Source of the DNA: Oculina patagonica
Lineage: Eukaryota
Assembly (NCBI RefSeq): GCF_052425735.1
Contig: NC_135770.1
Coordinates: 8,680,001-8,744,000, forward strand
Direction: 5' to 3'
Length of the DNA: 64,000 bases
Shown here in pieces: positions 6,678 through 41,174 of the stretch. Every line of letters starts with the position of its first letter. The stretch's first letter is position 1. The translations under genes were made by a program, and so were the position numbers. Below the pieces are notes generated by a model, which saw nothing but the letters and a program-made list of their open reading frames with translations, searched no databases and was not told the DNA's origin.

Positions 6678-8992
6678 GTCTTGCTGCTAGAATTCCGTAA
6701 TTGTTATTTTGAAATCGCATCTTTGCACTTCTTACATAACTTGAGACCAATGGGAGATACATGACTTAGTATTTCTATAATTTAATTTTTCTAGCGTTTT
6801 CGTAGTTTTTCTAGCGTATTTGTTTGTTTCAGTATACATATAAACGTTGTTATGACCAGTCCGTTTTTTGGACTATACCGTTGTTTTTGCTTGATGTTTT
6901 GGTTTATCAAATCAAATAGGAATCATGAAATAATGTATTGCCGCAAATTGTAAAGTTCATAGTTTTTTTCCATCTGTTTTCTGTGGAGTAAAGTTATGAA
7001 GCAAAATCGTTGATTTTAACAATATCTCCTGGCTTATTCTCTGATTCACTTTTTAGCAGTGCATTTCCCAGATTTATGTCGATCCTTTGAAGGTGTAGAC
7101 AAGAAGTTTGATCCAGGCCTAACACAAACCAATCCTTTAATCCTGCAAACACCCTCATTAGTTATGTATCACGTTTTGATTCACATGTATCGCAAAACAC
7201 GAGATACTAGATCACGTTATTGTTTTGTTTACATTTTTTCTTTCGAAAAGCGTTTTACTTTTTGTAATGAACAATATAAAAAAGAGCTAATCTCACAAGC
7301 GTTCTCATTGGTTTAAACAGCGTACTTTATGAGACTACAAAGCACGCAGCTTAAGGGGACGATTAAGACGGTACGATTTTGCCTTCGATTTTTGCGTGCG
7401 ACACGCTTAACCATCGTCTGCCATTTGTGTGCGCGTGCAGCTTGAAGATCATTTCAGATCTCCCTTTTTTTCGCAAACGACGAACATACTGGCCATAACA
7501 ACGATATATCAGAAAATTATAGAAATACTAAGTTTTGTAAGAAGCGCAAAGATACGCTTTCAAAAAATAACAATTACCAGAATTCTAGTTGGTACAGTCA
7601 AACAACTTAACTATTAATTCAGATCTCGTTTTTATTGATATTTACATTATTTCCAATAACTGTAGTCAATACTCTTTACACTCGCATTTTAATTGTACTA
7701 CAAGACACGGATATCATCCTAAAATAGTTATAATACATTATTGTTTTCCAAAGTGAAATAAATTACATGTTTTAAGAGTCGCTTATACACTCCTCGTACA
7801 GGGAAGAAAAAAAAAAGGCCCTGAAAAAGTGTGCTTTGAAAGTAAGTCTTATGACAAGGCTCGCGTCAAAGCGATCAGTTTTCCTTCACATTCTGGCTGT
7901 GAACTGCTGATACTTTTTAAAAGTCGTTCAGTCTTTCTTTAGTTCCATAGTTCCTTTAGGAAACTGCAAGGGGAAAGGTTGGTGTAGTATCACAGTTTTA
8001 TTTTAATACAGCTAGCACGTAACTGCCTCTCCTGCAGACATTCAAAACCATCAAATGTTATTTAATGTCCGCTTATGAAGTCCTATTCGCCATGTTGAAT
8101 TCTCTATCGGCTCGACTACCGCCAACAGGACATCTTGACTAGAGATCTCATGATTTTGTCGACTTGGCTCGCTGTCGGACATCGCTCTGCTCTCAGTACT
8201 GCTTCGCTGTGTCTCTTGAATGAGCGTATTATAGAGGATTCTAGCCATCTGCTTGGGTAGCTGCTCCGCTATGGAAGGGCTCTTTTTTCGTATTCTGGTC
8301 ATCTTGTTGTTTTTCTGAACGTTTTCCAGACGTAGGTGACAGAGAAATTTACTCCTTTCGCTTCTTTGCAGTTTAGTTTGGTGTTGTTGGAGTAGTTGGC
8401 AATCAAATATTTGTGTAGCAACTTTTAAACGTTCTCGGATGGCAGTTGTGAAATCACTGGTTCTTTCGGCTGCCGGTCTAGTTTAAGAATGCCCTTTCAC
8501 GAGCAAGGCTTGCGGCTTATAAACACGTTGTTTTGCATCTCAATTCTTTTCTTCTTTTGTCTGGAGTCTTTAACAAAAGCCTAGACTTTGAGAAAAACAA
8601 CTTTGCCGCATGATAGCCAGTCTTAAGTCACCTTGTAAAGAAACGAAAAAGTCATTTTGCCCGGTCATTTTTTCATGTTCCGCACAGATGTAAGAAGAAA
8701 GTGTCTGACATTTACCTGTTGTCTTGGAAAACGAAAAATCTGATTACCTGTCGAACACAAGTTGACAATGTACTGTACAAAACACACTCATTGTTACTGA
8801 CCGTTATTAACAAACAAATGGCATAAGTTAATTTGATTGTTTCTCGGCATTGTAAGTGCATTATCTTAAGGGTATACTCTTGGGAAATACCAGTATGAAA
8901 GACCTAAAAAAAATAAGTCGTTCATTAAAGTATTCATGCATGCGCAGTGTTATTTTGTGTAGGTAACGTAAGGAACTTTCTAATAGTATACC

Positions 8993-9846
8993 AGGCGCCA
9001 TTGGATGGTAAAGATTACGATAGAATACCTTTAAATAAGCTCTCTTGCAAATCGGCAACAGAATTCCTTGTTAAAAAAAAGTTTTTAACACCTACTGCTG
9101 AAAAAAGGATGGTAAAAGCAAATTTGAATGAGAAAACAATACAACTCATTTATAGCCTTCCTTTCAAAGTCACTAAGGACACCAGACTTGCCATCTTTCA
9201 ATTTAAAATTATTCATCATATTCTGCCAACAAATTCAACGCTTTTTAGAGATGCACTGAAAGAAACAGATAAATGCCATCTATGCTCTGATAGACAAACA
9301 CTTACTCATCTTTTTGCTACCTGTTTGAACGTTAAAAGCTTTTGGTCTCACTATACTAATTGGTGGAATTCCAAAAACTCTGAGCCAATAACTCTTGATG
9401 AAAACATGATTATATACGGTGTTACCAATGACTTCTCTCGTCGACTTGGTTTAAACCTCTGCTTGATTATCGCAAAACAGTATATTTACACAGCCTCTAG
9501 AAAAGAAGAAGAGTACTACTGGGAAGCTTTCATGGCCATCCTTACAAGCAAAATTCAAATAGAGAAGCATAAATCTAAGAAACAGATACAGCTGTAACCC
9601 TCAACATTAAATATAGTATTTAAAAAGGCCAAAAAAAAAAAAAAATAGTCAGCCACGCTACCTTTCCTCTGTCCTTTTTTTTTTTTTTTTTGTTATTTTC
9701 TTTGTTATTTATTTATTTATCAATTTATTTTTGCATGCCCTCTGTTTAACTTAAATAATGCTTTTTTAAGTAAGCTATGTATTGTAATGTATTGTATTGT
9801 CATTGTTAATAAATAAACTGCTATTTAAAAAAAAAAAAAAAAAAAA
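8993..9846 (+). mobile_element. 5'-truncated L1/Tx1-type LINE (ORF2 C-terminal zinc-binding region, 3' UTR, poly(A))
   Basis: The ORF to 9597 has FQFKIIHHILPTN..C..C...QTLTHLF..C..V..FW (zf-RVT-like). AATAAA-like signals and an A-run lie at 9827-9848. The TSD AATAGTATACC occurs at 8982-8992 and 9847-9857. Confidence 0.93.
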
Positions 9847-17242: not shown

Positions 17243-17770
17243 TTAATCTTCCCAGAGTTTCGGTGATCCCGGTTTAGGACAAGAGGGGCGCTCTGGAAGA
17301 TCAGGACAAGGGCTTGAGGGGATTTCAAGGGGTGGTAGTGTTCGCTGGGGTCGATGTCGCTCGTACTTTGAATAGGATAAGCTTCGTTCATCCCTCCATG
17401 TAAACGGAGGAACGTAAATCTCTTTTTTGGGCGAAGGAAGTATATTACTGTTCGTATCTGTTCTAGGCGTCCATAAAAAGTTCGAGTCACTGACCAACTC
17501 TTTGTTAAGTTCACTGTCCGAATTAAGGAAGCGCGAAGCTTCGAGCGATTGTGTTATGAACGTTCCATTTGTTACACTTGCTCTCTCACAAGCTGTTGAT
17601 TGTGTCGTGTTATTACTACCGCTTCCTATAGCTGGCAAAGGAGTTCTTTGTTGAATTTGAGGCGCTGAGATGCGTTCGTGAAACTCCTTCTCTTGTCGAA
17701 GCAATCTTAGCAATGCCTCGGCCTCAGCGTCCTTCACTCTGCCTCGCATAGGAATCTTGGCGCTCTCCAT
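17243..17770 (-). CDS. Orphan protein, 175 aa, paralogue of 33541..34218
   Basis: ATG at 17770 in a GCCATGG context; GC-rich island. Shares IP.R....D.E..A.LRL, LP.(I/L) and DL..RPS.P.P motifs with the 33541 ORF. Confidence 0.75.
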   Translation of the reverse strand: MESAKIPMRGRVKDAEAEALLRLLRQEKEFHERISAPQIQQRTPLPAIGSGSNNTTQSTACERASVTNGTFITQSLEASRFLNSDSELNKELVSDSNFLWTPRTDTNSNILPSPKKEIYVPPFTWRDERSLSYSKYERHRPQRTLPPLEIPSSPCPDLPERPSCPKPGSPKLWED

Positions 17771-20729
17771 GGCAGTGTTCGGCGAAGAACGAGATAGCAA
17801 CAATTTTTTTCACGCCCTTGCCTTAAAAACCAGTCTTGTGCTCTCCTTTACACTAAGCGGATCTTCTTGGCTTTCCAACTGTCGCTTCCATGAGGGTCAA
17901 AATCCCATCCTTGACGCTTGCATTTGACGGGACGTTTTCACAAGCACTAGCTAATCACGAACTCGTCACGGTGGCTCCCAAGGCAGCTAAATTGAATCAA
18001 CAATCTTAAGAAAACATCGGGATTTGGCTGTTAAATGCGCGCGCTATTGATCTCTGACATGAGCTGTCAGCCTTGCCTCGCCATTGGCGCAAGATAATTG
18101 TGTGTTTTAGTCGCAATTAATATTCCTGTTCAAAACTCTTCACAAAAGAAATGGCAAATAACTTTTTAATGAAAACGCGCTGCAAAAGTCAATAGAGACA
18201 AAGTTGCGAGCTCGAGCCTTTATCCCGGCCTTTGTTTCGCACTGTGTTAGCTGTCAGAACCAAAATGACAGCACCGCTCGGTGCTGAGTCAACAGATTAA
18301 AAGAGTATTATTTTCACTGACAAATTCTGAAGTAACCTCGCGTGCATGTTGGATATTTCAGTTTCATACAGCGAGGACTGAGAAAATGAGCAAATCGTAG
18401 CAACGGAATCTAGGGAAGACATTTGAAAAAGTGGAACAAGGACACATCGCTCCTGACACTGCAAAATCAAAGGTAAGATTTTTTGGCCTTCTTTTTATCA
18501 TGAAACAGTGAAAGATAGTGACCATTAAGAGGGAAAAGAAGGCGAGAAAAATATTGGGCGTCTCTTCAACGAAACTGAAGCATCTAATTCGAGGGCTTGC
18601 TCAATAATCTTTGCGGCTAAACAAGAATTAACCGCTGCCTGTTCTCATAATGCAAAGCTGTCAGCGCTAATCTGGGAAAAGTCTTGTAAGGTAAAGTTAA
18701 AGCTGCTCGCAATATTCGGTGGTCTACAATTTTGACATCTCGAGTCTGCTGTATTGTTTTCGTGGCAGTAAGAATACTGTGTCTTAATTCTTGTCAAAAA
18801 GTCTCGACATAGTTTGCTCAGAATCTCGACTGAGACTCTATACAGAGTCGTTCTGAACAACATAGCTACTGTGTTTGATTTAATTCCAACCTACTTAGTT
18901 ACCCCAAACTTTAAAGCGATTGCCTTTTATCATAGCTTCCTTAAATATTTCGTTCGATTTTAAATAAGATCGCTACAGACAATTTTCACAGGCAGAACAA
19001 ATGGTTGTAGTCGACTGTTGTTTCAAACTGACATACGGTGAAGAACTGACAAAAAAATGGCCGACACCAAAATACTCCTGTAAATTTCCTACAATAATTG
19101 CAATAATGAACAACTAATCGAAAAATACTGATATAATTACATCACTTATTGGCCCGAGGGCAATTTTTAATAAAGATGTTTTAAATTAAGATAAACCATA
19201 GAATTTTTGCAAGAAAAGTAAAACTTTATAACGGCTTTTAAGCATAAAAAACATAAAACATAATAAATACATTCGTGAAAAAAGTGAAAAATTTCTGGAT
19301 CAACGCAATTGAAAGCTGTTTTAAACCTTTCTTGACCTTTATTTTTTTCAAATCACGTTTTTGAAAAGTCCTAATGAATTTTATAGTTGCTAATTTTACG
19401 GGAAGGTAAACCATTGTTTGAAATCACATCCGTTAAATTGTGTTAGTACTCGAGTGTAAATTAAAAACGAAACGGACATTAAATGAATCGTCCCGAAAGC
19501 GACGATAGTTAATTTGAAAACGACAGAGTATGATTTTATAAAAGGTTGTGTTTGACACGCAGCATGTATAAAATGAAAGGTCAAGAATTGATAGTACGTT
19601 TCAACAATGAAGAGCTTTAAACTTCTCGATGTTATCAATCTGTTCAATCGACCTCGCGTGAATGATGAACAGTTGTATTTTCAATTAAGTCCCCCTAATG
19701 CAAGTTCCGCCTGCAAAAGTAATTAAAAGACAACTTGTGGGTCAAACACAGCGAGATGGGATGCGAAACTGAAGCATTCAAAGGCGACATAAACTTCCGT
19801 TTCATTCAGAGATTTCTCAAGAGCGATCTTTAAATAAATAGATTCAAGCATGTGCTTCCTTCCAGGCGAGCTTAACTTTGCAATGCGAATACAATGACAT
19901 GGGCTTCTCTCGTTGTCATAGAAACAAAAACAAACTGAACAACGGACTTTGAGGAAACAGATCCACAATGCAAAAACAAGTAAAAATTTTCAATGCATGA
20001 CTCCCCAGCCGAGCGATAACTGACCGAATTCTGCATGAGCTTTGAAGGAAATATTGTTGTTCAGGCCCTTCTCAAAGACATTCAGTATTTTTTTAGTGCA
20101 GATTATTGGTAGCACTTGTTGGCAGCGCTATGTTTCCAATTTACATGGGATAACCTTATTTGGAACTTTCCCACGCTCTCAAGTTTAGATGACAAAACGT
20201 TACAGTGCAGAAAAATAAACTTTAGAAGGATTCCATAGAATTTGTATTATTTTCAATCAAAACAACGCCATGAATATAGCCCATCAGATTGTGCCTCAAC
20301 CTATGCCGGGAAATGGAGGAACAACATTTAGAAGCTATTATTCAGTGCTATGTTTTTGCTGCTTTTGTTGTTGTTTTGTTTAACAGTTTTTAGTTTCATA
20401 AATTCGTGCAATCACAACAACGGCTGTCGAGGGTTATAATGTTATTTTTTTTTTCACTTTTTAAATTTGAAGAATGACCAACCGTTAATTAGTTTTTACA
20501 ATATCAACGACGTAAAAGTCGTCTCGTTTTGTGACGAGATTAAACAAATCATCAACAAGCTAAGAGAACTAGGGACGATAGCCTTGTTGCAATGAAATGA
20601 GAACGGCGGGCGAACTGGGTTATTGCGTTGGACTTTAGATCGATCGCTTTGTTGACAGTGGAGTAAATACAATAAATAAATATATTTTTATTTTCGTGGG
20701 GGGTTTGGTAAGAGAAAATAATTTTAACC

Positions 20730-20915
20730 AGTCATTGTGTTGTGTTCTTAATTCGGCAAGACTTCACTCTTGCAGCGCCTCTCTCCACCAGGGTATTAAT
20801 CCAGGTATCCTGCAATGGACTAGCATACCAACCGTGAAGTGGGGAGGGGGAGGAGGAGGGAGGAGGGGGGGGTGAGAGAGAGTAGCAATACTTCTAGTCA
20901 CTCTACGCTACAGAA
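20730..20915 (+). mobile_element. Degenerate SINE fragment
   Basis: GTGTTGTGTTCTT..GGCAAGAC..CACTCT..GCGCCTCTCTCCACCAGG core; a related copy lies at 54430-54580. Confidence 0.55.
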
Positions 20916-23900
20916 AGCACAGCAAGAATCGGGAACGGCTCGGTTGAGTTCAAAATATAACGACCCGTCTCAGCATATTTGCACAAAAAATGTTACCAAG
21001 TTAGTTTTCAATAAATTTTACTCAATAACATTGAAGGTTGACTGAAAAATGTATGCTAAATCCTTTGAATATTCTTAAGATATTTCAAACTTAGGACCGA
21101 AAAAGGAGTTACAATTTTTTGTGTACAAAAATAATATATTTTAAGACGAGATTACTTTAAGTCTTAACCATATTGTAAGTTTAATAACTCTGTGAAAAAG
21201 AGATGACATTTTTCAATCGAAAGTCAAAATTAAATAAGAAGGGAAGAAAAAAGCTGTCAGTTCAAAGGAGATTAGACTTTTACAGCCAGGATAGAGCCAG
21301 CTGCTTTCCTTTAGAGCTAATTCAAAGGAAGAAATACTCTTTCCCTTTTACTGGTATAATTTCAGTAAACAAGCCGTTTTCTTAGGCCGTTAATGAAACT
21401 CTTCCTAACAGACTAAACTTTACTGCGAAGTTAACCGCGTGCATGAGAGGAATTCATTCAGAGTTTTCATGTTCCTTTTCTAAGTTTATTAAAACCCGAC
21501 AGCTGTTTGGGGCTTAATATCTTTTCCGCGCATTAATTCAGTGTTGCTAAAGATTGGAAAACAGGATCAACTGCTAACAGAGACGAACAGTTATACGAAT
21601 CTTTCAGGTAAAACTAAGTAATTATTATTTTGGTTTGCTTCCTTTTAACTACTCGTATTTATACTCATCGTCGGCACTCACAAAACTACGCTTGGAAAAG
21701 CAACAAAAACCCTAGGTATTTGGCGTGAAGCAGTTGAACATCCTGTCTAAAGACGCTTTATTAAAATGTTGCTGCTGTAGTGAAGGCAGGATGTGTGAAC
21801 AAAAATAAACGAGAAACACTCATCTCTAGAAAAAGCGGGCTTAAAAAGGTTCGATTGCCAAACTAGAAGCCAGAGAGCGTTTCTGCATTTAAAAGTACGT
21901 ATACTCGCGTGAACTAAATAGAATTGTCCCTTGCAGTTGACATTACAGTATACATTGTCCCAAATAAGTCCGATAACTTTAACAGCGATCGACACCTTCT
22001 TTTTCCTCCAAATATTAGTGCGAAATCGACTACACAGATCACGATAATTATGTATTCGATCACCATGAGGAAATTGTCTTCACATAATAACGAAATTCTC
22101 CCAACTGGTTCATTAAAGATGTGCGGAGACCTGTAGGGAGAATTTGTATTTAGAAAGCATTGTGTAAGGAGATATCAAACTTTTAATACTGAAAACACTT
22201 CCTGTATTTTACATTGACAATGAAAAAAGACTTGTTTGGTTGTGTGACGACTAATAACCTCTGTCGCTTTTTGAATAGTCAGACATAGTTTATTCGAGAA
22301 CATTTAAATACTGAGCGGCTTTTTGTGTATTACTATTAAAACCAGACGTTCCTCAAAGCAGCTCACCTGATTTAGTTCGTTTCATAAGGTTGTTAAATTG
22401 GGGTAGACAGATCTGCCGAATCCGCGATCCTCCATATTTTCGAAATCCGCGAATACGTTCAATTTATCAGAAAAGTCTGCAGTGCGTGTCGTGAGCATTT
22501 TAGGTCAAATTCAACAATTATTAGACTACGAGCCCGAGTTTTCTATGATTGAATACTCAACGAGTGAATTTACATTTTGATTACAGACGATAAATGAGTG
22601 ATTTTATTCCATTTTTCTTGCAGTATTTTCTAAAAGGACTAGAAACCATTTTCTTAGAGTTTTTATATATCGAGTTCTAAAAACACTCGTGAAATAAGTT
22701 TTGAATTACTCCAAAAAGCTGTGGCTCGTGTTTCCAAAAGGGTTTAGGGTTCAGGGCAAATTTCATTAGGGTTTCCAATAGAAACACGAAATATGTTTCT
22801 ACGTTTTTTAATTTGAATTATAAACGATTTTGTTGTCAATTATAACTTCATCCAAATTATTTCATTTCACCACAAATATTAACGGCCCAGCAAGGAAGCC
22901 ATTGCTAAAATCGTGCTCTAATTGACAGCTGAATGCAAGCTACTTGTAGGCACGTAGTAAAAATTGTGGTGCTACTGAGGCCGCGCCGCATTCGGAAGTT
23001 TGACATTAAAAATAAACCTCAGACAGGTTTTTTGTTTGCTGAAGAAGTTAATTATGTTTGTTAGTATTGTTTTGTACCCAGTAAAAAGGCCTCTTGAGAT
23101 TAAAAATGCAAATTAAAAGCTCGTACACTTCAAATATTTAAAATCACCACTCGAGACAAACAGAAAAAGGTGTTAACGACTTTCGGCATAAGGTGTTACC
23201 GGCAAAACAGAATTTATCGTTGATGTGTGCCGCAAAGAGAACGATTAAGAATAAATTCGAAATTTCTACACGTTTTAAATGCATCAAAGCAAGGAAAACC
23301 CGTGCTAGATATCTCAAAGTAAAACGTTTTTTAATAGACCCTAAAAATACTTTGCTGATCATTAGATATTCTTATTGCTGTTTGTGTAAAATAAGGTCAA
23401 AATATTGATATTGCAATATCACGACAAACGCCCGGGAAAAATTTAATAAAGTAGCGACCAATTTTACGCGGTTTTAAAAAGGATTAACTTTAATTACTCG
23501 GTGCAGGTGTATTTTTAAAGCGGTAAGCTTTGTTTTGCTGCAGCGAGAGAAAGCACTCGTTGCATAAATTGTCTTAGTTTCGTCTTAAAGCGAATACCTA
23601 AAGGAAGTTTTGTGGAAAGTGAAAATTCTATTTTGGATTTTTAACTCCGTCCGTCGACAAAAAGACCATAACGGTAAGTTTAACATGTGTTTTGGTTACA
23701 TCTAAGACGCTCACTGCCTTGTACTGATTGTCTTTAGAGTCCTTCAGTAACATAGATTTTATTGATAACTAGCTGCAGTTATAAGAGGACGTGTCTGAAA
23801 GCAGACAATTTTAATGGTACAATTACTAAGATAGTATGATACCTATCAAGAACAGTGGATAAAATTAACTTTGAAGGGCTCTTTGGACTTATGATACCAA

Positions 23901-24535
23901 ACCTTAATCTCCAAATGGCGATATCAAAGACGGAGTGAAGTGGATGAGTACGATTTTTGAAACAGTTTAAAATTCAGCCGGCAATAGTAAACAACTCCTA
24001 ACTTTTTCAATTGGCCATTGTACCATTGCAAGCATTTTGATTCTGAGTTCGTATGCCAACAAACCACTTTAACATACGTTTTAGGTTTTCCGGTAAAAAA
24101 GTACTCAAATATGACAGAATGGATTTCAAGTAAAGTTTAATTAATTTGACTGATTAGCAACAGTTTTAGTTTTGAAGTAGAACTGAAAATTACTAATTTG
24201 GTTTATCCTATGCGCCGCTATCTGACTTATAATGGCTGAATTAAAAAGTATTGCTACCAATAACCGATGTTTGTGGATGAAATTTCACCACTTAATGAAT
24301 AGTAAACGTGCTAATGAAGAAAAAGGATCCGAATAAGCTTGTTCACGAGTCATTTTTTTTTTGTTTTCCTTGAAAAGAACAGGATACGCTACAAAAAGGC
24401 AACGATATTTTTTTTTTAATTTTTAAAACTTGGCCCATCTTGTGTAATAAAACGGCATTATGTCTTTTCAGTCCCTGTTCAGAAGCGAATACTGCATACG
24501 AAATTGACCAAGCTGGTGATTTTCGGCAAAAGCGC

Positions 24536-24548
24536 GTTGCTAAGTAAC
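24536..24548. promoter_or_regulatory. RFX X-box-like motif
   Basis: GTTGCTAAGTAAC matches the GTTNCY-N-RGYAAC X-box pattern closely. Confidence 0.35.
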
Positions 24549-24715
24549 GGACAACGTATACAAATGGCGGAAATCGAATGTGATAACTTTGTTAGTAATG
24601 CACGTGCTAAAAGCTCTTTCAATAAATTATACTGAATGTTGAAAGAGGAAGCCACATAATCCCAAGCTGGGTTTTAAGAGTGTCCTCTATCTAAGGTCTA
24701 GAAAAAAGATATTAA

Positions 24716-25352
24716 GGGCGCGTTTTTTTCATAATTCTCTATTTTCCAATTGCCCATAATACACTTTGTTTGCCCCCAAATTTTGCATAACTATTGTTTT
24801 CATTCTTTGGGAGGACTGCATATTTCCAAACAATAATTTATGCAAAATTTGGGGGGCAAACAAAGTGCATTATGGGCAATGGAAAATAGAGAAGTTTGGA
24901 ATGAGAATGGTTGGTACAGAATGCTAGGAATAATTCGTATTCGGCCGCATTAGAAAACGCCCATGTAGTCGAGATGATATGCGCGGTCCTGACACGAGAA
25001 AACATTGCGTAATAAATATGGCGGCTGACGAATAGGCTGCGATTGCAGCCATTATCACAGCAATTCTTTTACTTAATTAAGAGGAGGAGAAAATTATGGA
25101 AACTGTAATGGATTTGCCGAATGTTCTGGCAGTGCTATTCGCAAAGGAGAGGAGACACATCCCTTGAATCACGGTCTATGCCGTCCGCCATCTTGGATTT
25201 TCATTCACAACATTCTGTTCATTCTGCCCCTGGGAGCAGAGTGGATGGAATGGTGTTCTGTCCATTCCGGAATGGAAAGGGGGAAAAAAAAAAAAGCCCA
25301 TTTCCCCTTCCGGCCCTTCCCCTTCAGAATTGTGAATAAAAAAAACGCGCCC
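24716..25352. mobile_element. PIF/Harbinger-type MITE with a nested palindromic MITE
   Basis: TAA TSD; TIR GGGCGCGTTTTTTT / AAAAAAACGCGCCC. Confidence 0.75.
24735..24893. mobile_element. Palindromic MITE nested in the Harbinger-type MITE
   Basis: ~65-bp inverted arms TTCTCTATTTTCC..TGCCCATAAT..TTTGTTTGCCCCCAAATTTTGCATAA. Confidence 0.8.
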
Positions 25353-26119
25353 TAAGTTTCACCTTACTTTTGATTGCGATAAGGTTGGTGCTTTTAATAT
25401 TTCTTCCAAAATCAGAGAGGGGGGAGAGTTTTTTTTTTTTGGATCGATAAATCCTTCGCTGCGTGAATAAAATATAAGTTCTATTTATGGGCCCGGTGTC
25501 CTGATGTCATTTTGACGAAACTTGTGGCCGGTTCGGTGAATTATTTCAGTGAGATTTCTGAGAGATTTTTTCGAAGCTTAAGCTTATCAAAGTGTACATA
25601 AAGCCTTCACTATAGCCGATGTTTATCACGAAAGTCGAACTGAACAAAATTCTGAATATGCGGTAAAGTCGGCGGTCACTTATTCTAATCCTTACTTAAC
25701 ACTGCTTTACATCGCAGACAAATTAACCTGTTAAATAACAGGAAATTTACATTTGAATATGAAGCTTGAAATGATTCGAAAATAATTTCATGAATTTCGT
25801 AGTCAAGCACCAGACAAAATAAACACAACACGAGGGAAAATTCGATACGAATTTTTCGAATTTCCGCTTATGCGAACAGCAATTTTTGATTTCTTTCTCA
25901 AACAAATGTTCTAATTAATTTATCTTGAAGGCAGTTACATCAAACAAAGTTCCGCCTCAAAGCAGGCACGTAGAAATTGTTTTATGCTGTGCAAGTTCAT
26001 CGGGATGAGCAATTCGTGATACGAAATTAAATGATTACAGTATAAAATGAGGAATAAAGTAAAAATGAGTGCAATTAAAATTAATTGGCTGTTAAAATTT
26101 TACTCTGACTGCTAATTAA

Positions 26120-26153
26120 AATTAGACTACGAGCCCGAGTTTTCTATGAGTAA

Positions 26154-26188
<35 letters not shown>

Positions 26189-26398
26189 TTAGAAAACGAG
26201 GGCGAGTAGTTAATTGTTTTAGTAGAAACTCTAAAGGATTGCAGTCCAAACAAAATATTGTGCACTTTGAAGACAAAAATCAAGAAAATTTACCGCTTAA
26301 AGAGCTACGCGCGGCGACTGTTTTCTATCGGCGAATAGAAAACAGTGGGAGAGCCACGGTGCGGATTTCCAATAGAACACAGCTGAGTTTCTACTAAA
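26120..26398 (+). mobile_element. Hairpin-headed non-autonomous element (possibly Crypton-type); 5' fragment also at ~22520-22565
   Basis: ATTAGACTACGAGCCCGAGTTTTCTATGA occurs at both sites. Hairpin around GAGGCGCAGCCGAG; inverted repeat TTTAGTAGAAACTC / GAGTTTCTACTAAA. Confidence 0.55.
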
Positions 26399-26828
26399 TT
26401 AGATTAGATGAGCCTTAGGTGGCCGAATCCGATTTGACAAGTAAAAGGAATTTTATAAATGCAATAGAAAACTGTATTTCATTATATACAAGTTAATTAA
26501 ATTGCGTACCGGGAAACTGGGAGGTGTACAACATGGAAAATGATTGGGTGGTTGCTATAATATGATTTTAGGCTATTCTAACCTTTGCTCTAAAAGTGTT
26601 AAGAATGGAACTATTTTCTTACTTTTTAAAAAACAGTTCTTGTCAAACTTTGTACACGGAATCATATTGATTGTTACGTTTTTAACATCTTTCAAATATT
26701 TTAGGAAATTTTTAGATCAGCTACAAATCGTTTTTTAAGTATCATTACAAAGTGACTTACTCTAAAGTTTTAGTCTTAAGAGAAAATATTTATTTTGACT
26801 TCATATGCTGGTAATTTCATTTTTTTTT

Positions 26829-26865
26829 ATCATCGCCACCACCACCACCACCACCATCACCATCA

Positions 26866-26907
<42 letters not shown>
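26829..26907. repeat. Compound (CAC)n/(CAT)n microsatellite
   Basis: Direct reading of the sequence. Confidence 0.95.
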
Positions 26908-27594
26908 TTTATGTTGAGCTCAGCAAACTGACATAACAGAGGAAAGCCTTGCTGACAAGAGAAGGGGTAGCTGAGAAGGCTAATGTAATTTGTCGCGTCA
27001 AACTGATAAGTTTCATTTTACTGGCAAATGAATTACATTATCCAAGGTAGATCGAAATTCTAATCCTTTGTACCGATTACCATAGCGGAGTTATTTTCAT
27101 GTGTCTTGTGAGAATGTGGTGTTAAATCAAGACACTACGGTTATCTTTTTTATTTGTCCCTTGTCTGCATTTATAGGAGGAGTTAATGACCATCCCTTTC
27201 TAGAGCAAAATGCAGAGTTCTGGTTTTGAAAGGGATGTAAGATAGCTTAGACTTGCCAACAGGCAATCGATTAATTCTTTTTAGACGACTTATTGTATCT
27301 ATAAGAAAATTCTCGATTGTGATTGGCTCTGTGTGTACCTATTTGTCGCGTAACTGGCGTGCAATCACGTGGGTGTCCAATTAAAAGTATCCAATTTGAA
27401 CAACTTTAAGTAGGATATCTGTAATTGTACACCTACACCATTCGCGGGTGAATCATATGCACTTAGATGGGTGTTCCTTGCTGTTTTCCTACAGTTTGTA
27501 AAACTGATCGAATATGCCTATGACTTTTTCATACAAAAAAGCTTCTCAAAGACTTCCTTACTCCTTACCTGAAAATTTGTTATAGATGCGATTT

Positions 27595-27740
27595 ATTAGT
27601 AATTGGACCTCGTGTTGTACAATTCAGAGTAATCGTGTTCGTAATTTCAATCTGCCTCGAGCTGCGCGCTAGGCCAATTTGAAATTACTCGCGCTATTGC
27701 TTCCTGAATCGTACTCCACTCAGTCCGATTAATATTACAA
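27595..27740. repeat. Imperfect long hairpin at the end of an interspersed repeat (~27290-27740)
   Basis: GTAATTTCAA..GCCTCGAGCTGCGCGCTAGGC..TTGAAATTAC core, with flanking GGAC..GTAC.ATTCAG / CTGAATCGTAC..GTCC. Confidence 0.6.
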
Positions 27741-30700
27741 ATAGTTGGACAGACTTTTGGACGCCAAGAGGCAATGTTATCCCAAACCCATTCACGGTGA
27801 AAAATGAAAAGCTGTAATGGGGATGTTACACAATACTGCGCTCTATTTTTTTGTTTATTTTGTTGCGGTGATGTTGCAAAATAAGAATTTAGTTTTAGTT
27901 CGAGAAATGCTTATACTGCAATGTGTTGAGGTTAACCAATAATTAAAGTTGGTAAGTTAATTCCTTTTACAATGTTTTTTTCCATTACACATCGTCTGCC
28001 AACTTTATTTATCTATGCTTCAATGCTTTAATGGTCAATTTAACTTCTTTTGAATATCCAAGCTCATTCATCATTTTACTGACGTTACTTTAACCCTAAT
28101 TAAACAGCTAATATCATCAAAGTCGGCCTTCTTCGTTACATTTTTAAAGAGTATGTTTTTATTGAGGGACTTATTTGATTGGTTGAAATCCTGTGGGTTT
28201 ACGGCTTCAAAATGGATTTGGCATCACTTCAATTTTTTACGTTTAAAAAAAAAACTTCAATACCATTCGAATTCGCTATTTTAAGAACCATATGCATAAA
28301 TATTGGAGAGTCCCCAAAAGAAAATTAAAATGTGAGTTCTTGAAGACTAAACAATTTTTAAAGTTAAAGTATTTACATGTGTATGAATATTCTGCCCTCT
28401 TTAATGATTCAGTCAATGTCCGCACAAATTTGCTTGCCTATGTTTTAAAACCATTATTCCTTCGGCCTGCGAATCTACTGGTCGATCCAATTATGAAGTA
28501 ATTTTTTTATTTTTATATATTTCAAACACGGAAAAAATGTAACCTAGAAGCGTTCCTTTTTTGTTTGATTGACGTTTGGCCATTTTGGCGCCAGGAAGTC
28601 GCGCAATTAATAAGAAGTGATGTATGGTCCATTAAAAGAACTTTATTATTCCTTGTTCTTATAAACATCGGTTAAAATCGATGGATATTTCTTAGTTAAT
28701 CACGTTTCCTGTCAAACACAATCTGTTCATATGGCACATCACGCAAAAACGCAATGAATAATTTAAGTAAAGGAAATTCCATATACATACAGTTCGCAGC
28801 GTGTAATTTTTCACAAATATTGTCATACCTGGAAACGTGAAAAGGTAAGATCTGCTTTTTTAATGATCTCTTTTCTTCCAACAATTGCCAGGGAAGCTGG
28901 TGTAAGTTAAACGTAAATATATTCGATAAAAAAGAATGATTTTTGCCTCGCAAGAAAGGATAATTTATGAGATAGAATACCGACAAGCATTTTCCTCCGG
29001 AATTTTAATAATTCTACTCGTTTGATATGATGTTGAAACGGTATAGATATAAAAACGATCTAAAAAAGGTTTTCAATATTGCTTACATTGAGGTTTGACG
29101 GCTTTAAACATAACAATGAGTTAAAATGTTGTCTTTTGAAATGACTAAGTAACAATTGGGGAACATTTCATCAAAAGCCGGCTCACAGGTTCTGTATTGA
29201 ATAAAAGATTCACAATGGGATAAAAACGAAAAAAAGCTTATTAATGGAACTAAATGCTCAAAAGAATTATTTTTAAATATACTCCATGCTTTTTTAAAGT
29301 TACCGAGGTAACGCTTTTTTACAGGCCAGAGTGGACGATTTTTTTTTATTCTTAAACGTGCAAACACTAGTATAATTTCCCGGATTTCGTCTTGAAATCG
29401 TCGAGTTTGTTCTGTGACCGCTGTGAATTCACAAGAATACATTCTCAATTACTATCTGTAACCATAAAATAAGTAAACAAATAGAGCGATTCTTCATTCA
29501 GCGATTCGCTCTCTTTAACTACCGAGCCAAACATTTCAGAGTGGCAAAAATATAAATTGCCAACGACGATTATTTTGTAAAAATATCATGTTTCGTATAT
29601 AGCGAGGAGAAATCCTCGCTTACATTTAATAACCTTCGTATCTAAACGCAGTGCATGTGAAATACAGAAATGACGAAATTCTGGATATTTTTTATCGACA
29701 AATGTGTCTCAAATGTTTTCAAAAAAACTAGTTGGATTTTGGAACAGTTTCGTTTTATGCTAAATTTAAAAATAATTTACCTAACCCTAGCTCGTCTAAG
29801 ACTTGTTTTACGAAAAATAGTAGAGTACTTTAGCTTTCCGCATTTCAGTAGAGTTCAAAACTTCTGACGTCGTAAAATGGAGCTCGCATTTAATCCTATT
29901 ACATGTAATCCGTCAATTTTATTTAATTGTTTGCGGTGGCTATTTTCAGAGCTATTTTCCCAATGATTCCGCCCCTTGCAGGCACAAAGAAAAGACATAA
30001 TCCCTATTTTCTAAACATCTTTTTTGACCTTCTATTAAAAGTACGAACCAAGTAAAAGCGCGCTCTTCACAGCAAGGGGTTCGACGCGTTGCTAAGTCTT
30101 CAGACAAAACACGAATAAATCGTATTGAATTTAAGCAGGTACGCTTCAAAGCACTGAAAATTAACATTTTTTCCTGAATTCCCACTTATTGGTTTGTTGC
30201 TAAACCAATAATTACCGCTGAAAATCTTACTTCTGCTAAACTCTACTCCGTATACCACGAGATAAAAAAAAAAACAACAATTTTTAAACTGTACTGAATT
30301 TGACTCAGACAAATAAAACTATTCGAGTCTGAATCTGAAAAACGAAATGATACACATGCATGTGACCGAAGCCTAATTTCTTCTTTCCATATTCATACGT
30401 TGTCAAGCAAACAAGTATTGAGAATAAAAAAAATGCATGGCTGTTTATTAACTCCCTTATCATTTAGAACTTTGAAGCGCGCGAAGTAAAGTTTCGATAC
30501 TTAGCGACAACAGCCATAGTTAGTAGAGGAGATATCGAGCTAAGTTTCGAACCTTCGGCAAAATCATGTTTGCCGGAGGCAAGGTTAAATTAGTTTTCCA
30601 ACTGTTTGAAAATACAAATATATTATCTCTAAGAAGGTTTTTTTTTGCCTACGGTCGGTTTTATTCTTAATGTCAAAGGCTTTGAATTTCTTAACAAGAA

Positions 30701-32636
30701 CTTTCCATGCATTGAAACTATCATGCTATACTTTCGAAATAATCACGAAATATTCCAAATTCGAAAAAGAAAGAATCAACAAACGCAGTTAAATTTCAGT
30801 GGCGAAATAAAAGAAATATGGCCTTTATGAGTTCAAAATTACCGTCGACCCCATGCAATAAATAATCTCTTTATGATATTGTGCGAGATTATCCCCAAAT
30901 GCGATTCATGTTGAGTTCGCCATTTCATAGGCGAGATATCACGTGCTAAAACTTAAGAGATTTTTCGGCCAAAGTTTAATTTCAAAGGCAACTTCATCTA
31001 CAAGAATATCTATATCTGCGGTCGGTAGATGAAGCTCTTAATCTCTCTAAATGCAGTCGCTACGTTACCCCCAGGGCGTAATCGAGGACACCCCGCCAAA
31101 AGCTCGGTCAAGTTTTCTTTAATTTCTTTCGTTGATCTATTCGTAATTAATGTTTGAGTTAGGAGTAAACTGCGCGATACAAAAGACATACAAATTTTGT
31201 GGGTTCGAAAGCGTATCGAATCAAAACTAAAAGAATTGAATAGAATTTTCGCCTGTCTTGTTTTGAACCAATTTAGATACCATCCAGCGACCTACGCGTT
31301 CCATTAAAAAGTTCCTTGCCTTAGGCTGTTTGAAGTTTTGCCATGACGGCCGCGCGAGTGTAACTAGGTTTTAAATAGTTGCAATATCATTCGCCCTAAA
31401 CGCCGCCCGATAATTTTCGTGAGCAATTTGTGACATTTCAAGATGTAAAGTTGCTGTAGTTTCAAGATGAAGTTCCGGTGACGCAAAACAGTTCTGCATT
31501 TCCTCGTGTGACTCACATCAAAAAGGGAAAACGCTTCTCGGTACGGTCGCAATAAACGACGCGTAAATTGACTAGCTGACTGTAGAATACAAAGCGAAGG
31601 GTGTTTAAGGGTGCAACCGATAGAGTTTTTTTTTAATTCGGCCCTCTACACAAAGCCTATTGAAGGTAAGCAGTTTAGTTTGTTTTGTTTTAGTTAAGAC
31701 AAATGAAAGTTTTTACCCTCGGGGGAAAGAAAAACTAACTTATATCATGTGGAGTAGCTAAGCTTGTCTTTAACTAACATGGAACTTTCTAGAAAATGCC
31801 TGAGACACAACACATATGGTTATAGAACAATTCAATATTTTGCCTTTCTAACTTAATGACTGGATTTTCCGTTCAGGGGGTTTAAGCTTACCTTTCGCGA
31901 ATTTTCTATTAAGATACAAATTAAACTTTGGGTTTTAAAACATTGGTCGCATATCAAAAACAATCTTTTAGAGTAATTTCACATTGAATCTGTCAGTAGC
32001 TTTTAAATTTCTTAGTCGTATAAAGAAAGTAATTGTAAGAGAACTTGTCTTCTATGTATGAGAAATTACCAGGTGCACTTGCAGAAATTCGCAAAGATCA
32101 ATAATTTTTGTAGGAATTCACAACTTAAACTGCACAAAAAAAAATCAACGCAAATCGATCTTTGAGAAACACTGTGCTTTGCGTTTTAAAAGTGTATTTT
32201 TACTATTTGCGTCATAAAAGTGAAAAACCCACAAACGAGAAACAATGACATGGCAAAATCGTTTCGAAAGTTTTCCGCTTAGGACTAAAATGTTTAACAA
32301 GATAGCTTTTTTTAATGGCACGCTTCGTCGCCAGTAATCTATTTTTTTCTTTTTTTTTTCAACTATATGATACCACCAAACAATCGATTGAGAGGCTCAA
32401 AATTTGCGTAGCTGTAGAAGTTGTTGACATTTGGAAGACACAAAACTGATACGGAATTGAAATTCAATTTGGCCATTTTCAAGGGCTTTGCTCGCGGCTT
32501 TTAGATAAAACCGAGGGTTTATTTAAGTTGAAGCGCATTGCGGCAAACAGGGCGACAAGATCGCTACCGCAAGCTGAAATCGCGGCTAATTTTTGGTCGC
32601 TTAAAGTCGCTTAAAGAAGGTACTGGCTAGTGTTTT

Positions 32637-32650
32637 GTTTCCATGGTAAT
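32637..32650. promoter_or_regulatory. RFX X-box-like motif upstream of the 33541 gene
   Basis: GTTTCCATGGTAAT has one mismatch to GTTTCCATGGTAAC; a donor-like TG|GTGAGT lies at ~32922. Confidence 0.45.
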
Positions 32651-33540
32651 AAGAAAGAAAAACAGTGTGGGTCCACGTTTGCAGCTGTCCGCACGCGCGA
32701 TTGTTTTTGACAACATCGCAGGGGATCTGCTATAAGCGAAGCACGTCACAAAGCCGAAAGAGTTGGCCGTAAATAATAACAATTAATACTCCCCATCAGC
32801 CACTTCATAACAGGAGCTATTTGCCAGTGACTCGCTATGATAAAGCAAAGAAGGGAACTGGTTTAAATTTGGAAAGAAATTTCAAGTTCGATCGTGGTAC
32901 GATGTTGTAGCTTGTGCAAATGGTGAGTTTCTACACCTAATTAACGTGGCCAAGAATCCACCGCAAATGGAAAAATAATTGTTCTCGCTAGACACAAAAG
33001 TCGATTCGCCAGCAAGGATGTGCAGCGTTCAGCAGACGATTTTCATAGCAACTTAAACAAAACAACTCGACATCTATCACGTAGTGTGAATTTTTCATGC
33101 GCTTATATTAAAATCGAAAGGCGCGTTTCCTTCACTAAAATGCCGTATACTCTGGATTTAAATTAATTCGTCAATTTTATGTGCAACGCTTCATCCTTCC
33201 TTGACAGGTACACTTCAATGGTCATAATTGCATTTATTTTTTCGTTTCAGTTTCGGCGGCACATTAACAATGAAACAGGCTACTGTGTATAAGATTGGCT
33301 TTCACAAAGCGAGAAGAAAAGATTTCAAACTTAGCGTCTTTAACGTAAACTTAGATTCAATTACTCAACATTGCTTCATCTCCAGTTTCATGTTCCAGTT
33401 AAAATAGTGTTCCCATCACCGGCGTCATGTTACTAATATATTTGTTCTTACAAAAGAAACTTCCCTTGTTTCGACAGGTTAAAAAACAACGTCGAAATCA
33501 TTTGAGGTGATGCCGCCCGTCAGACGAGTACAGGCGAAGT

Positions 33541-34218
33541 ATGGAGAACACAACTGAGAACTACCGCAGAATACCGCCGCGAAGCAAATTCAACGATGAA
33601 GAATCAACGGCAGTTTTGCGGCTTATTATAGAGCAAGAGCGACTGCTTAAGAACCCCGCAAATCCTGTTCTAAACATAACTAGTGACAAATTGAAACGGC
33701 TTCCTCCTTTAAACGGGAAAATGCAAGATTCTTTCAGTGACTCCGGCTCAGATTCTAGCTCAGGATTCGAGCCTCATCGGAATCAACGAAAACACAGATC
33801 TGCGGAGGACGACGTTGTCCTTAGCAGACCAACACTTTTAAAAGGAAAAGAACTTCGTGGGTCTGAGGAACCTGCGTCGATGGGTAAGCCGAAAGTTCCA
33901 GAAATTTATAGCACGCCGAAAATCGCGCGCCCTCGAGACCGCGAGAGGCCACGCGCGTCATATGGAAGAAACTCTCAAAATCGTAGTAACAGCACCGTAA
34001 CACTCCCTCAAGCGAAAACCACCGAAGACTATAACAGTTTTTCTACGACGGAGGTCGATTTAAACAGACCGTCAAATCCTACGCCGTTTATACACGTGGA
34101 TGACTTGGGAAATCCTGATGAAAATACATCTAGAACTTCATACAATCAGAGTATATGCTATGACAGCGACGAAGATAAAATTGAAACTACAGAAACCTAC
34201 ACTTCCTACATAAATTAA
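33541..34218 (+). CDS. Orphan protein, 225 aa, single coding exon, paralogue of 17243..17770
   Basis: Long ORF preceded by a polypyrimidine/CAG acceptor at ~33477. Disordered, rich in S/R/D/E, with N-terminal motifs shared with the 17770 ORF. Confidence 0.8.
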   Translation: MENTTENYRRIPPRSKFNDEESTAVLRLIIEQERLLKNPANPVLNITSDKLKRLPPLNGKMQDSFSDSGSDSSSGFEPHRNQRKHRSAEDDVVLSRPTLLKGKELRGSEEPASMGKPKVPEIYSTPKIARPRDRERPRASYGRNSQNRSNSTVTLPQAKTTEDYNSFSTTEVDLNRPSNPTPFIHVDDLGNPDENTSRTSYNQSICYDSDEDKIETTETYTSYIN

Positions 34219-39921: not shown

Positions 39922-41174
39922 TCAACTTTTAGTCATTTCGTTCGCCAAGCTAGGCAAAAAAAAAGAAACAGCTCGTTTTCTCCTGGGACGGGTTTTCGAT
40001 TTCTCACTTGAAGTTGAACTGCTCTCCTCCGTCTCGCGTTCAGAAATGGCTGGCATGTGATGTGCTGAGGTGTCTTTTGACGTTCCATTTTTCTCTTCCG
40101 GAGAAACGGTTCGACTTTTCTTTGACCGTTTTAACTCTCTTTCCTGAGCGCGTTCTTTAAACAAACTTGCGGATATATTCTTGCAATCCATCGAGGACAG
40201 CTTTGACGTGTTTTGCGATACTTTTTCTGAAGAATTATCTCCGTCTTTGCTAGCAATTGCTAGTGGAAGGCTAAAAGCTTTGTGAAAAGTTAACTTCTTC
40301 TCTTCTGTAAGTTCTACATTTTCTCCGGAGTCGTTGCTCTTTTGGTCCGCGTTAAAACACGGTGCTAAATGTTTTTGTTCGTTAACACTTCCTTCGGCTC
40401 TCGTGTTTTGGGAATTTTTTCTGATGGCATTGACAAAGTTTTCAGCATGCATAGCTTTTCTATCCAATCCAAAATCCATTAAAGCCACCCCTCTTTCGCT
40501 TAAAATTCTCATTTTCTCTTTCTCGGATTTGAGTAAGAGCGCGGTCCAGCGCTTCTTGCTATCTACAGCGATATCTTGTTCCTTCTTGGCGTAAAACCAC
40601 GCAGCCCCCCAACGCCGACACTCACTTTTCGCCGCAGACTTGCACGACTTGTGAAATCGCTGCACATCCCCCTCGCCAATGTAAGGAAAGCTATTTGCCA
40701 CGCCAGAATCCTTTATCGAAGACTTCCTAACTGCACCATAGCTTGGAGTCTGTTCCTTGCTTGTCCTTCTCAAAGGACGAGAATTTTTTTCGTCTGTAGG
40801 ATCAAAAGCCAGCGACGCTGAGCCACCGAACGATTTTTGGTTCATGGGTAGCTGTGTGTTTGCTTCCGACAAGGGCGTCTTCGTCGAATGTCTTCGTTCG
40901 CGCGAGATTGAAAAAGAATTCCGTTGACGGAGTTGTTTCTCGCGTTCAAACCGAAGTCGGTCTCTCTGCAAATTGTTCAGTTCTTTAACTACTTTTCGTT
41001 CTTCTTCAACGTGGTGAAGAAATCTCGCGTCCTTCTTCTTTCCAAATCAGCGCTGAGTTTTCGGAATTTTTCCTCTTCCACGCGGCTTTTAAGATCCAAC
41101 CATTCACTCGGTTCTCGTTTTTCTCGCGCGGGATCTCCAGAATTAAGCACCAACTCCACTATATCTGATGCCAT
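39922..41174 (-). CDS. Orphan coiled-coil protein (CCDC190-like N-terminus), ~417 aa if one frameshift at 40989-41046 is corrected
   Basis: ATG at 41174 (AAAATGG) opens MASDIVELV..EEEKFRKLSADLE. The -1 frame continues KKDARFLHHVEEERKVVKELNNLQRDRLRFEREK into the 349-aa ORF. AATAAA on the minus strand at ~39737. Confidence 0.7.

Follow-up and report, generated by a model that had tools for sequence, protein, structure and literature searches.

Small disordered regulators such as PKI, RCAN/calcipressin, ARPP/ENSA and PP1 inhibitor-2 are built from one helix and a set of short docking motifs. In cnidarians, a large share of the genes is taxon-restricted, and the function of these genes is not known. 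Here we describe two genes, F1 and F2, located in a 64,000-nucleotide stretch of the Oculina patagonica genome (NCBI RefSeq assembly GCF_052425735.1, contig NC_135770.1, positions 8,680,001 to 8,744,000, hereafter the window, to which all coordinates refer). F1 (17243..17770, minus strand) encodes 175 residues plus a stop codon in a single coding exon and starts with MES. F2 (33541..34218, plus strand) encodes 225 residues plus a stop codon, wholly within its last exon. The two genes lie head to head, and their start codons are 15.7 kb apart. A first-pass annotation, made from the sequence alone, had described them as orphan paralogues sharing an amphipathic helix and a few linear motifs. Considered jointly, the data make it probable that F1 and F2 are real genes of one unnamed anthozoan family, and ancient paralogues that encode motif-docking proteins.

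A word-indexed search of 5.8 billion proteins recovered 37 relatives of F1, with identities decreasing from 98% to 67% in Stylophora, 48% in Acropora and 41% in Exaiptasia, and 39 relatives of F2, down to 78% in Desmophyllum and 45% in Nematostella. Orthologues of both genes carry intact open reading frames (ORFs) from Scleractinia through Actiniaria, and all named database copies are labelled as “uncharacterized” or “hypothetical”. Orthologues in model sea anemones include Nematostella LOC116602319 and Exaiptasia LOC110231670. Compared codon by codon with orthologous loci, F1 shows a ratio of nonsynonymous to synonymous substitution rates (dN/dS, omega) of 0.10-0.14 and F2 one of 0.09-0.17; dS values range from 0.4 up to saturation. 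Purifying selection also operates outside the N-terminus (omega 0.10-0.22). F1 and F2 are genuine protein-coding genes.

The F2 orthologue is demonstrably transcribed. Transcript contigs and the sequence itself place the AG splice acceptor of the F2 coding exon, which is preceded by a pyrimidine tract, at 33476..33477 on the plus strand. Three transcript contigs from a related coral (L013, L016 and L018) align to the window from 33475-33477 onwards, and their upstream parts map kilobases away. Many Logan contigs of about 3 kb, from a coral carrying a 77%-identical F2, are spliced relative to the window and collinear with it to about 36110. Because an in-frame stop codon sits between the acceptor and the ATG, the entire F2 protein is encoded in the last exon.

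The similarity between F1 and F2 centres on the N-terminus. Residues 5-30 of F1 (17681..17758, minus strand) match residues 10-35 of F2 (33568..33645, plus strand) without gaps, as the first-pass annotation had it, with 9 of the 26 positions identical (BLASTP E 0.002, single comparison). All the ORFs and strings that it quoted were found in place, and the motif coordinates were re-derived by translation. Pairwise BLASTP detected nothing else notable, and nucleotide comparison agreed with the annotation that no DNA similarity exists between the two genes. Profile hidden Markov models (HMMs) of each family score members of the opposite family at 2-13 bits. The resemblance held its significance against shuffled sequences: only 0.09% of composition-preserving shuffles reached the median real score with the F2 HMM and 0.7% with the F1 HMM, and reversed sequences scored 4.4 or less. 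A background of 1784 ORFs, translated in six frames from the window and four related loci (145 kb of cnidarian DNA in total), yielded just two non-self matches to the F2 HMM below E 1, namely the two F1 genes. The reciprocal search with the F1 HMM was noisier.

Profile-profile comparison by hhalign gave E 6e-4 and a probability of 28% for the first alignments, and a score of 40.3, E 2.7e-5 and a probability of 74.5% once octocoral, sea-anemone and metagenomic members had been added. Column-permuted F2 alignments scored 12.5±2.5 (maximum 19.8), and none of 150 reached the real value, which lies about 10 standard deviations (SD) above them. Within-block permutations scored 14.3±2.8 (maximum 23.0, 0/150), and reversed profiles 16-18. 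With the helix cut from both alignments, the best local match paired ERPSCPxP with RPSNPxP, scoring 24.0 versus a null of 10.1±1.8 (maximum 15.4, 0/100). Global comparison without the helix yielded an unstable permuted null (SD 30) and is hence uninformative. Two regions are therefore each significant alone, and the order of the motifs is identical in F1 and F2. By these measures, the likeness is weak yet beyond chance. A fortuitous resemblance, or ORFs that are not genes at all, is scarcely credible. It is true that the pair was picked out of a 64-kb window after the fact and that its pairwise E value is only 0.002, but none of the permutations mentioned (0/150 and 0/100) matched the real scores, and the genomic-ORF background was clean for the F2 HMM. 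About 40 orthologues per gene, dN/dS values far below 1 and spliced transcripts of F2 orthologues speak against it as well.

The description of the remaining sequence as unalignable was too strong. Global and joint alignments revealed collinear anchors, namely a shared ME start, P-x-[LI], LP[PA][LIV] and K..EIY..P, and the rest of both proteins is under purifying selection. The ME start is also found in a distant F1 orthologue, P0031 (160 residues, starting with MRGK; contig L019, 1980-2483), which is a truncated database call. An in-frame ATG lies 21 nt upstream and extends the protein to MENTKIRMRGK, so that the corrected orthologue opens with MENT, as F2 does. These anchors bear on the alternative that F1 and F2 are unrelated disordered proteins that gained the same motif kit by binding the same hub, their adjacency being coincidental. 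Such convergence would fit a similarity confined to motifs and the low HMMER cross scores. We nevertheless regard it as unlikely, as four or five anchors occur in the same order together with the ME start, and the N-terminal match spans 34-51 contiguous columns, beyond a motif of 4-6 residues. Moreover, both coding regions consist of one exon, the head-to-head arrangement recurs, at 16-25 kb, in two other coral assemblies, and the signal rises as diversity is added.

Common descent of F1 and F2 as old paralogues is, in our assessment, quite probable. Scleractinia and Actiniaria each possess F1 and F2, which puts the duplication before the split of the two groups, in keeping with the old duplication originally proposed. 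Published estimates place the separation of stony corals and sea anemones several hundred million years ago. In a maximum-likelihood tree, F1 proteins form a 100/100 clade on a very long branch, and octocoral proteins fall on the F2 side; this tree is unrooted and cannot tell whether the duplication predates the octocoral split. The most likely origin would be an inverted local duplication before stony corals and sea anemones diverged. The head-to-head arrangement recurs in ERZ25067872, where the genes are about 17 kb apart, and in ERZ25071792, where the distance is about 24 kb and the proteins are 53% and 59% identical to those of the window.

The family has so far been found only in Anthozoa, that is, in stony corals and sea anemones and, for F2, also in soft corals; the term orphan thus holds only in the sense of restriction to one lineage. 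Searched exhaustively by HMMER with a merged profile, a set of 1.84 billion representative proteins returned just 22 matches at E ≤ 0.001. Among these, F1-type proteins come from hexacorals only, and F2-type proteins from hexacorals and octocorals, one cluster holding Xenia XP_046848435. The only named match outside the cnidarians, Dreissena KAH3724682 (P0085), is spurious, its score adding up seven weak stretches of a tandem-repeat protein. Another F2-type protein among the 22, P0090, is encoded by an intronless gene on contigs of 0.7-0.8 kb (L009, L010 and L011) from three marine metagenomes, including a TARA sample. P0090 combines the F2-like KFND with the F1-like DAEA, and groups with F2 in the tree. 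No further relatives of it were retrieved. Given P0090, the family may reach past the sampled anthozoans.

Several observations weigh against common descent and a docking role. The stretches that link the two sequences are short, about 35-50 columns plus 13, and their signal is weak; the hhalign probability is below 95%, and cross-family HMMER scores do not exceed the 2-13 bits mentioned above. Octocoral F2 proteins and P0090, unmistakably F2-type at 36-90 bits, do no better than shuffles with the F1 HMM, and no intermediates join F1 and F2 at HMMER significance. In disordered chains, short motifs may also evolve by convergence. The adjacency of F1 and F2 is seen in stony corals only; Nematostella has no F1 within 10 kb of F2, and the assembly holding contig L008 shows no F2 within 10 kb of F1. 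The amphipathicity of the helix is not significant, and the docking mechanism is an inference.

Downstream of F2, Nematostella carries two genes whose order and strands agree with those of the window. Also in Nematostella, a short ORF piece containing QQRTPLPAV is found 3 kb upstream of F2 on the same strand (L007, 7031-7165). It matches the LPAI region of F1 (F1 HMM E 0.003-0.02) and may reflect chance or an F1 relic, being too short to judge.

Apart from an N-terminal helix of about 20 residues, F1 and F2 are predicted to be disordered. AlphaFold2 models obtained with family alignments feature one helix each, at residues 13-34 in F1 and 19-37 in F2, and no other notable secondary structure. 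Most residues outside the helix have a predicted local distance difference test (pLDDT) score below 70, and the predicted template modelling (pTM) score is 0.17. The models bear out the architecture of one helix plus disorder envisaged in the first-pass annotation. The helix core is compact and hydrophobic (LLRLL in F1, VLRLI[IV] in F2), and is preceded by [KR]-[IF]-P-x-R-[GS]-[KR] and then by an acidic D-[AE]-E cap. The designation of the helix as amphipathic was dropped because its hydrophobic moment (0.31-0.37) is matched by 22-32% of shuffles; its hydrophobic residues are gathered in a compact core and do not line one face.

Downstream of the helix, both proteins carry the same series of motifs: an LP[PA][LIV] peg, usually following a basic residue, K..EIY..P, and RP[ST][CN]PxP. 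Motif counts were obtained from 43 aligned members, 25 of F2-type and 18 of F1-type. LPP[LIV] is present in all of them (25/25 and 18/18), and the longer form [KR]xLPP[LIV] in 21/25 F2-type and 16/18 F1-type sequences. RP.[CN]P occurs in 17 of the 18 F1-type and in 16 of the 25 F2-type proteins. Little or no variation is seen in the N-terminal core, LPP[LIV] and RP.[CN]P, which supports the motif constraint suggested earlier. Spacing was also described correctly for the pegs, as LPAI lies 14 residues after the F1 string and LPPL 18 residues after the F2 string, whereas the placement of RPSNPTP near the C-terminus is only loosely true.

In F1, the N-terminal module consists of a basic-proline lead-in, the acidic cap and the LLRLL core, and the alignment columns R9, G10, K13, D14, A15, A17, E18, L20, L21, L23, L24 and R25 are invariant. 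F1 has two LP pegs. The first, LPAI (residues 45-48; 17627..17638, minus strand), has P44, L45, P46 and I48 invariant. The second, LPPL (residues 145-148; 17327..17338, minus strand), is preceded by R-T and has L145, P146 and P147 invariant. Between them lies the EIYVPP anchor (residues 117-122; 17405..17422, minus strand), which is collinear with EIYSTP of F2. RPSCPKP (residues 161-167 of 175; 17270..17290, minus strand), in which R161 and P162 are invariant, provides the best helix-free profile match to F2. At the extreme end of the protein, LWED (17246..17257, minus strand) represents the family pattern SPK[FL]W[ED][DE], found in 13/18 members. This terminal pattern, the LxxLL box and YVP[PS][FY].W are specific to F1.

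In F2, the N-terminal module is formed by a PPRSKFNDEE lead-in and the VLRLII core, and columns P13, S15, F17, N18, D19, E21, L28, Q32 and L36 are invariant across Hexacorallia, Octocorallia and P0090. The LPPL peg (residues 54-57; 33700..33711, plus strand) is preceded by K-R, and L54, P55 and P56 are invariant in 25/25 F2-type sequences. A strongly conserved basic block, KVPEIYSTPK..RPR..RPRASYGR, spans residues 116-143 (33886..33969, plus strand), and G115, P120, I122, P126, K127, R132, R136, P137 and R143 are invariant or nearly so. RPSNPTP (residues 176-182 of 225; 34066..34086, plus strand) lies 43 residues before the protein end, and corresponds to R-[ST]-R-S-C-P in octocoral F2 proteins. 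A second, more C-terminal copy, RP[IT]CPxP, is present in the sea-anemone-type proteins P0068, P0070 and P0078 and missing from stony-coral F2. It scores slightly above RPSNP with the F1 C-terminal HMM, with all scores at 5 bits or below, and is a lead only. A motif of the RP[IT]CPxP/RPSCPKP type appears to be repeated within the family.

Elements specific to F2 are the basic RPR block, a C-terminal SYIN, and PVLNIT (residues 42-47; 33664..33681, plus strand), a loose PxIxIT-type pattern in which P42 is invariant and L44 nearly so. Through this strand, F2 might dock on calcineurin (PP2B) as a substrate or regulator. The pattern P-x-[IVLF]-x-[IVLF]-[TSHEDQNKR] is found at the aligned position in 21/25 F2-type sequences, including those of octocorals. 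It is degenerate, however, with Leu instead of the canonical Ile at position 3, and is found in just 3/18 F1-type proteins. The second calcineurin motif, LxVP, is present in 2/25 F2-type and 11/18 F1-type sequences, the match in the window F1 being LEIP at residue 148. We therefore consider a calcineurin role decidedly unlikely.

The N-terminal module could alternatively be a degenerate helix 1 of a Myb/SANT-like domain, pointing to nuclear chromatin- or DNA-binding ancestry or mimicry, a reading compatible with paralogy. A language-model search with F2 residues 1-62 retrieved almost only Myb/SANT-like clusters, and such clusters were also among the matches of whole F2. The F-x-x-E-E-x-x-x-(V)L-x-L pattern resembles helix 1 of such domains, and the arginine-rich block of F2 could act as a nuclear localisation signal. 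Yet the language-model scores (0.57-0.74) are leads only, and no Myb/SANT-like Pfam family (PF13873, PF13837, PF12776, PF10545) matched the window proteins at E up to 10 or the 25 F2-type members at E up to 1. AlphaFold2 predicts one helix rather than a three-helix bundle, F2 has no tryptophan, and the atlas matches of F1 belong to unrelated families. Myb/SANT descent is accordingly very unlikely.

On the docking reading, F1 and F2 would act as docking or regulatory subunits and would be neither enzymes nor structural domains. They are classed as docking-type proteins because a short helix and invariant pegs of 4-8 residues are embedded in a disordered chain whose fast divergence is still restrained by selection. 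The helix and the basic-LPP peg would bind one or more folded partner proteins shared between F1 and F2, and the Ser/Thr-Pro-rich motifs (TPK, SPK, RPS.P) may serve as phosphorylation-controlled contacts. After duplication, the two proteins would have specialised by means of private motifs. Because the secondary motifs have diverged, F1 and F2 probably share one common partner and differ in the others. If the genes are taken as real, we assign slightly less than even chances to their products acting as regulatory or adaptor subunits.

A bolder proposal, which we hold to be unlikely, is that the [KR]xLPP[LIV] peg and the helical core constitute an undescribed docking code in Anthozoa-wide regulatory scaffolds, of which F1 and F2 would be founding members. 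If so, many orphan disordered proteins of corals and sea anemones might converge on a single conserved hub, for example a phosphatase, a cyclin-CDK complex or an SH3-like domain, as their binding partner.

The family is very probably unnamed, as first supposed, since nothing significant was found in Pfam, PDB sequences or the literature. Pfam scans yielded no match for the two window proteins up to a threshold of E 10, and 25 F2-type members, scanned up to E 1, gave only scattered, non-significant single matches (BKRF4, DUF7054 and others; best E 0.0045). Among PDB chains, the F2 profile had no match even at E 10, and the merged profile just two, both at chance level (E 0.64 and 1.5). Literature searches by locus and accession names and by LPPL/LPPI/LPPV motif phrases found no papers. 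ESM Atlas neighbours of whole F1 (TEX33, UNC119_bdg, INKA) are mutually unrelated, score 0.74 or lower and were dismissed. A candidate third paralogue, the window ORF 61826-62008 (minus strand; F1 HMM E 0.056), was rejected, as it shares only the nine residues FYTPSYTWK, which lie within AT-rich junk.

The listed F1 ORF spans 17243-17803 on the minus strand; its biological start is the ATG at 17770 and not the TTG at 17803. A 2.2-kb contig carrying an F1 orthologue (L012), of RNA or DNA origin, follows the window without a break from 17964 to 15796, as would be expected of an unspliced F1 gene. For F2, three putative 5' untranslated region (5'UTR) exons were mapped on the plus strand, all with approximate boundaries. 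A distal exon at 28617..28692, the limits of which are set by homology, matches bases 29-104 of L016 with 84% identity. A second exon at 31275..31486 is supported by L016 and L018 (77% identity), and an alternative exon at 32631..32875 by bases 55-296 of L013 (81% identity).

An upstream ORF (uORF) of 15 codons, out of frame with F2 and overlapping its start codon, is located at 33510..33557 on the plus strand, its upstream ATG (uATG) lying in the +1 offset frame. The uATG is found 28-37 nt before the F2 start in 7/7 sequences (six loci and the window). Scleractinian uORFs (14-16 codons) overlap the main ATG of F2, and the Nematostella uORF ends ahead of it. The position is kept, and the peptide sequence is not conserved, which suggests translational repression of F2.

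Two ORFs located downstream of F2, at 39922-40971 (minus strand, 349 residues) and 43513-45204 (plus strand, 563 residues), have no Pfam match, are of low complexity and are probably disordered. A sister coral (412 and 561 residues) and Nematostella (421 and 549 residues) likewise have two ORFs of comparable size behind F2, matching in order and strand. Judged by size, order and strand, F2 and these two ORFs could make up a conserved orphan-gene block. A dispersed repeat of about 300-380 bp is located upstream of F1, at about 18.6-18.9 kb, and again at about 54668-55047. In related loci, the stretch upstream of F1 (L001, 8850-9198; L003, 1571-1867) matches the window at 54.7-55.0 kb with 74-77% identity. 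Retroelement remnants are found at 5208-6503 (minus strand) and 8947-9597 (plus strand). One remnant ORF has weak RVT_1 and GIY-YIG matches and a Penelope-like look, and the other has a zf-RVT match. The ORF at 57700-59430 (minus strand, 576 residues) has only a sub-threshold FAST_1 match (E 7e-4).

F1 and F2 thus represent an undescribed family of disordered, motif-bearing proteins that is restricted to Anthozoa and is of a general kind already known. Two taxon-restricted genes have been kept as a pair since before the split of stony corals and sea anemones, with constraint focused on a few short motifs. The LLRLL/VLRLII core, the LPP peg and RPSxP provide experimental handles, and orthologues are available in the tractable Nematostella and Exaiptasia. 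Should the LPP[LIV] peg be a shared docking code, it would mark a hub of anthozoan-specific regulation and a lineage-specific signalling layer. If it is not, F1 and F2 form a well-documented, ordinary lineage-specific family of disordered proteins.

Comparison with described motif systems yielded partial likenesses. PP1 regulators were discarded as a model, RVxF being present in 0/25 F2-type and 1/18 F1-type members. The same applies to SH3 class I ligands, with [RK]xxPxxP in 4/25 F2-type and 3/18 F1-type members; these ligands are of the RxLPPLP type, and the [KR]-x-L-P-P-[LIV] peg fits 6 of the 7 ligand positions, but the reading fails because the last proline is absent. Readings based on B56 LxxIxE, RVxF, SH3 class I or LxVP were set aside, since each of these patterns either falls within the helix or is not shared consistently by F1-type and F2-type proteins. 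Helical comparison motifs include the LxxLL nuclear-receptor box and the LD-type motifs of paxillin. ALLRLLR of F1 fits the nuclear-receptor box in 18/18 members, and VLRLI[IV] of F2 in 3/25, the pattern being common in helices. The acidic residue ahead of the F1 leucines is similar to that of the paxillin LD motif. The F2 N-terminus is a feature-space neighbour of Myb/SANT-like helix 1, with which it shares an aromatic-x-x-E-E...L..L pattern; unlike Myb_DNA-bind_3/_4/_5 and MADF domains, F2 has no HMM match, aromatic triad or helices 2-3.

With PKI, RCAN, ARPP and inhibitor-2, F1 and F2 share no sequence relationship, and the pseudosubstrate (RRNAI) motif is not seen in the F1 and F2 alignments. 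In kind, however, they resemble these regulators. F1 and F2 are 175-225 residues long and predicted to be disordered, with one helix, invariant motifs and Ser/Thr-Pro sites, and, as in those regulators, the remainder of the chain diverges fast while under selection.

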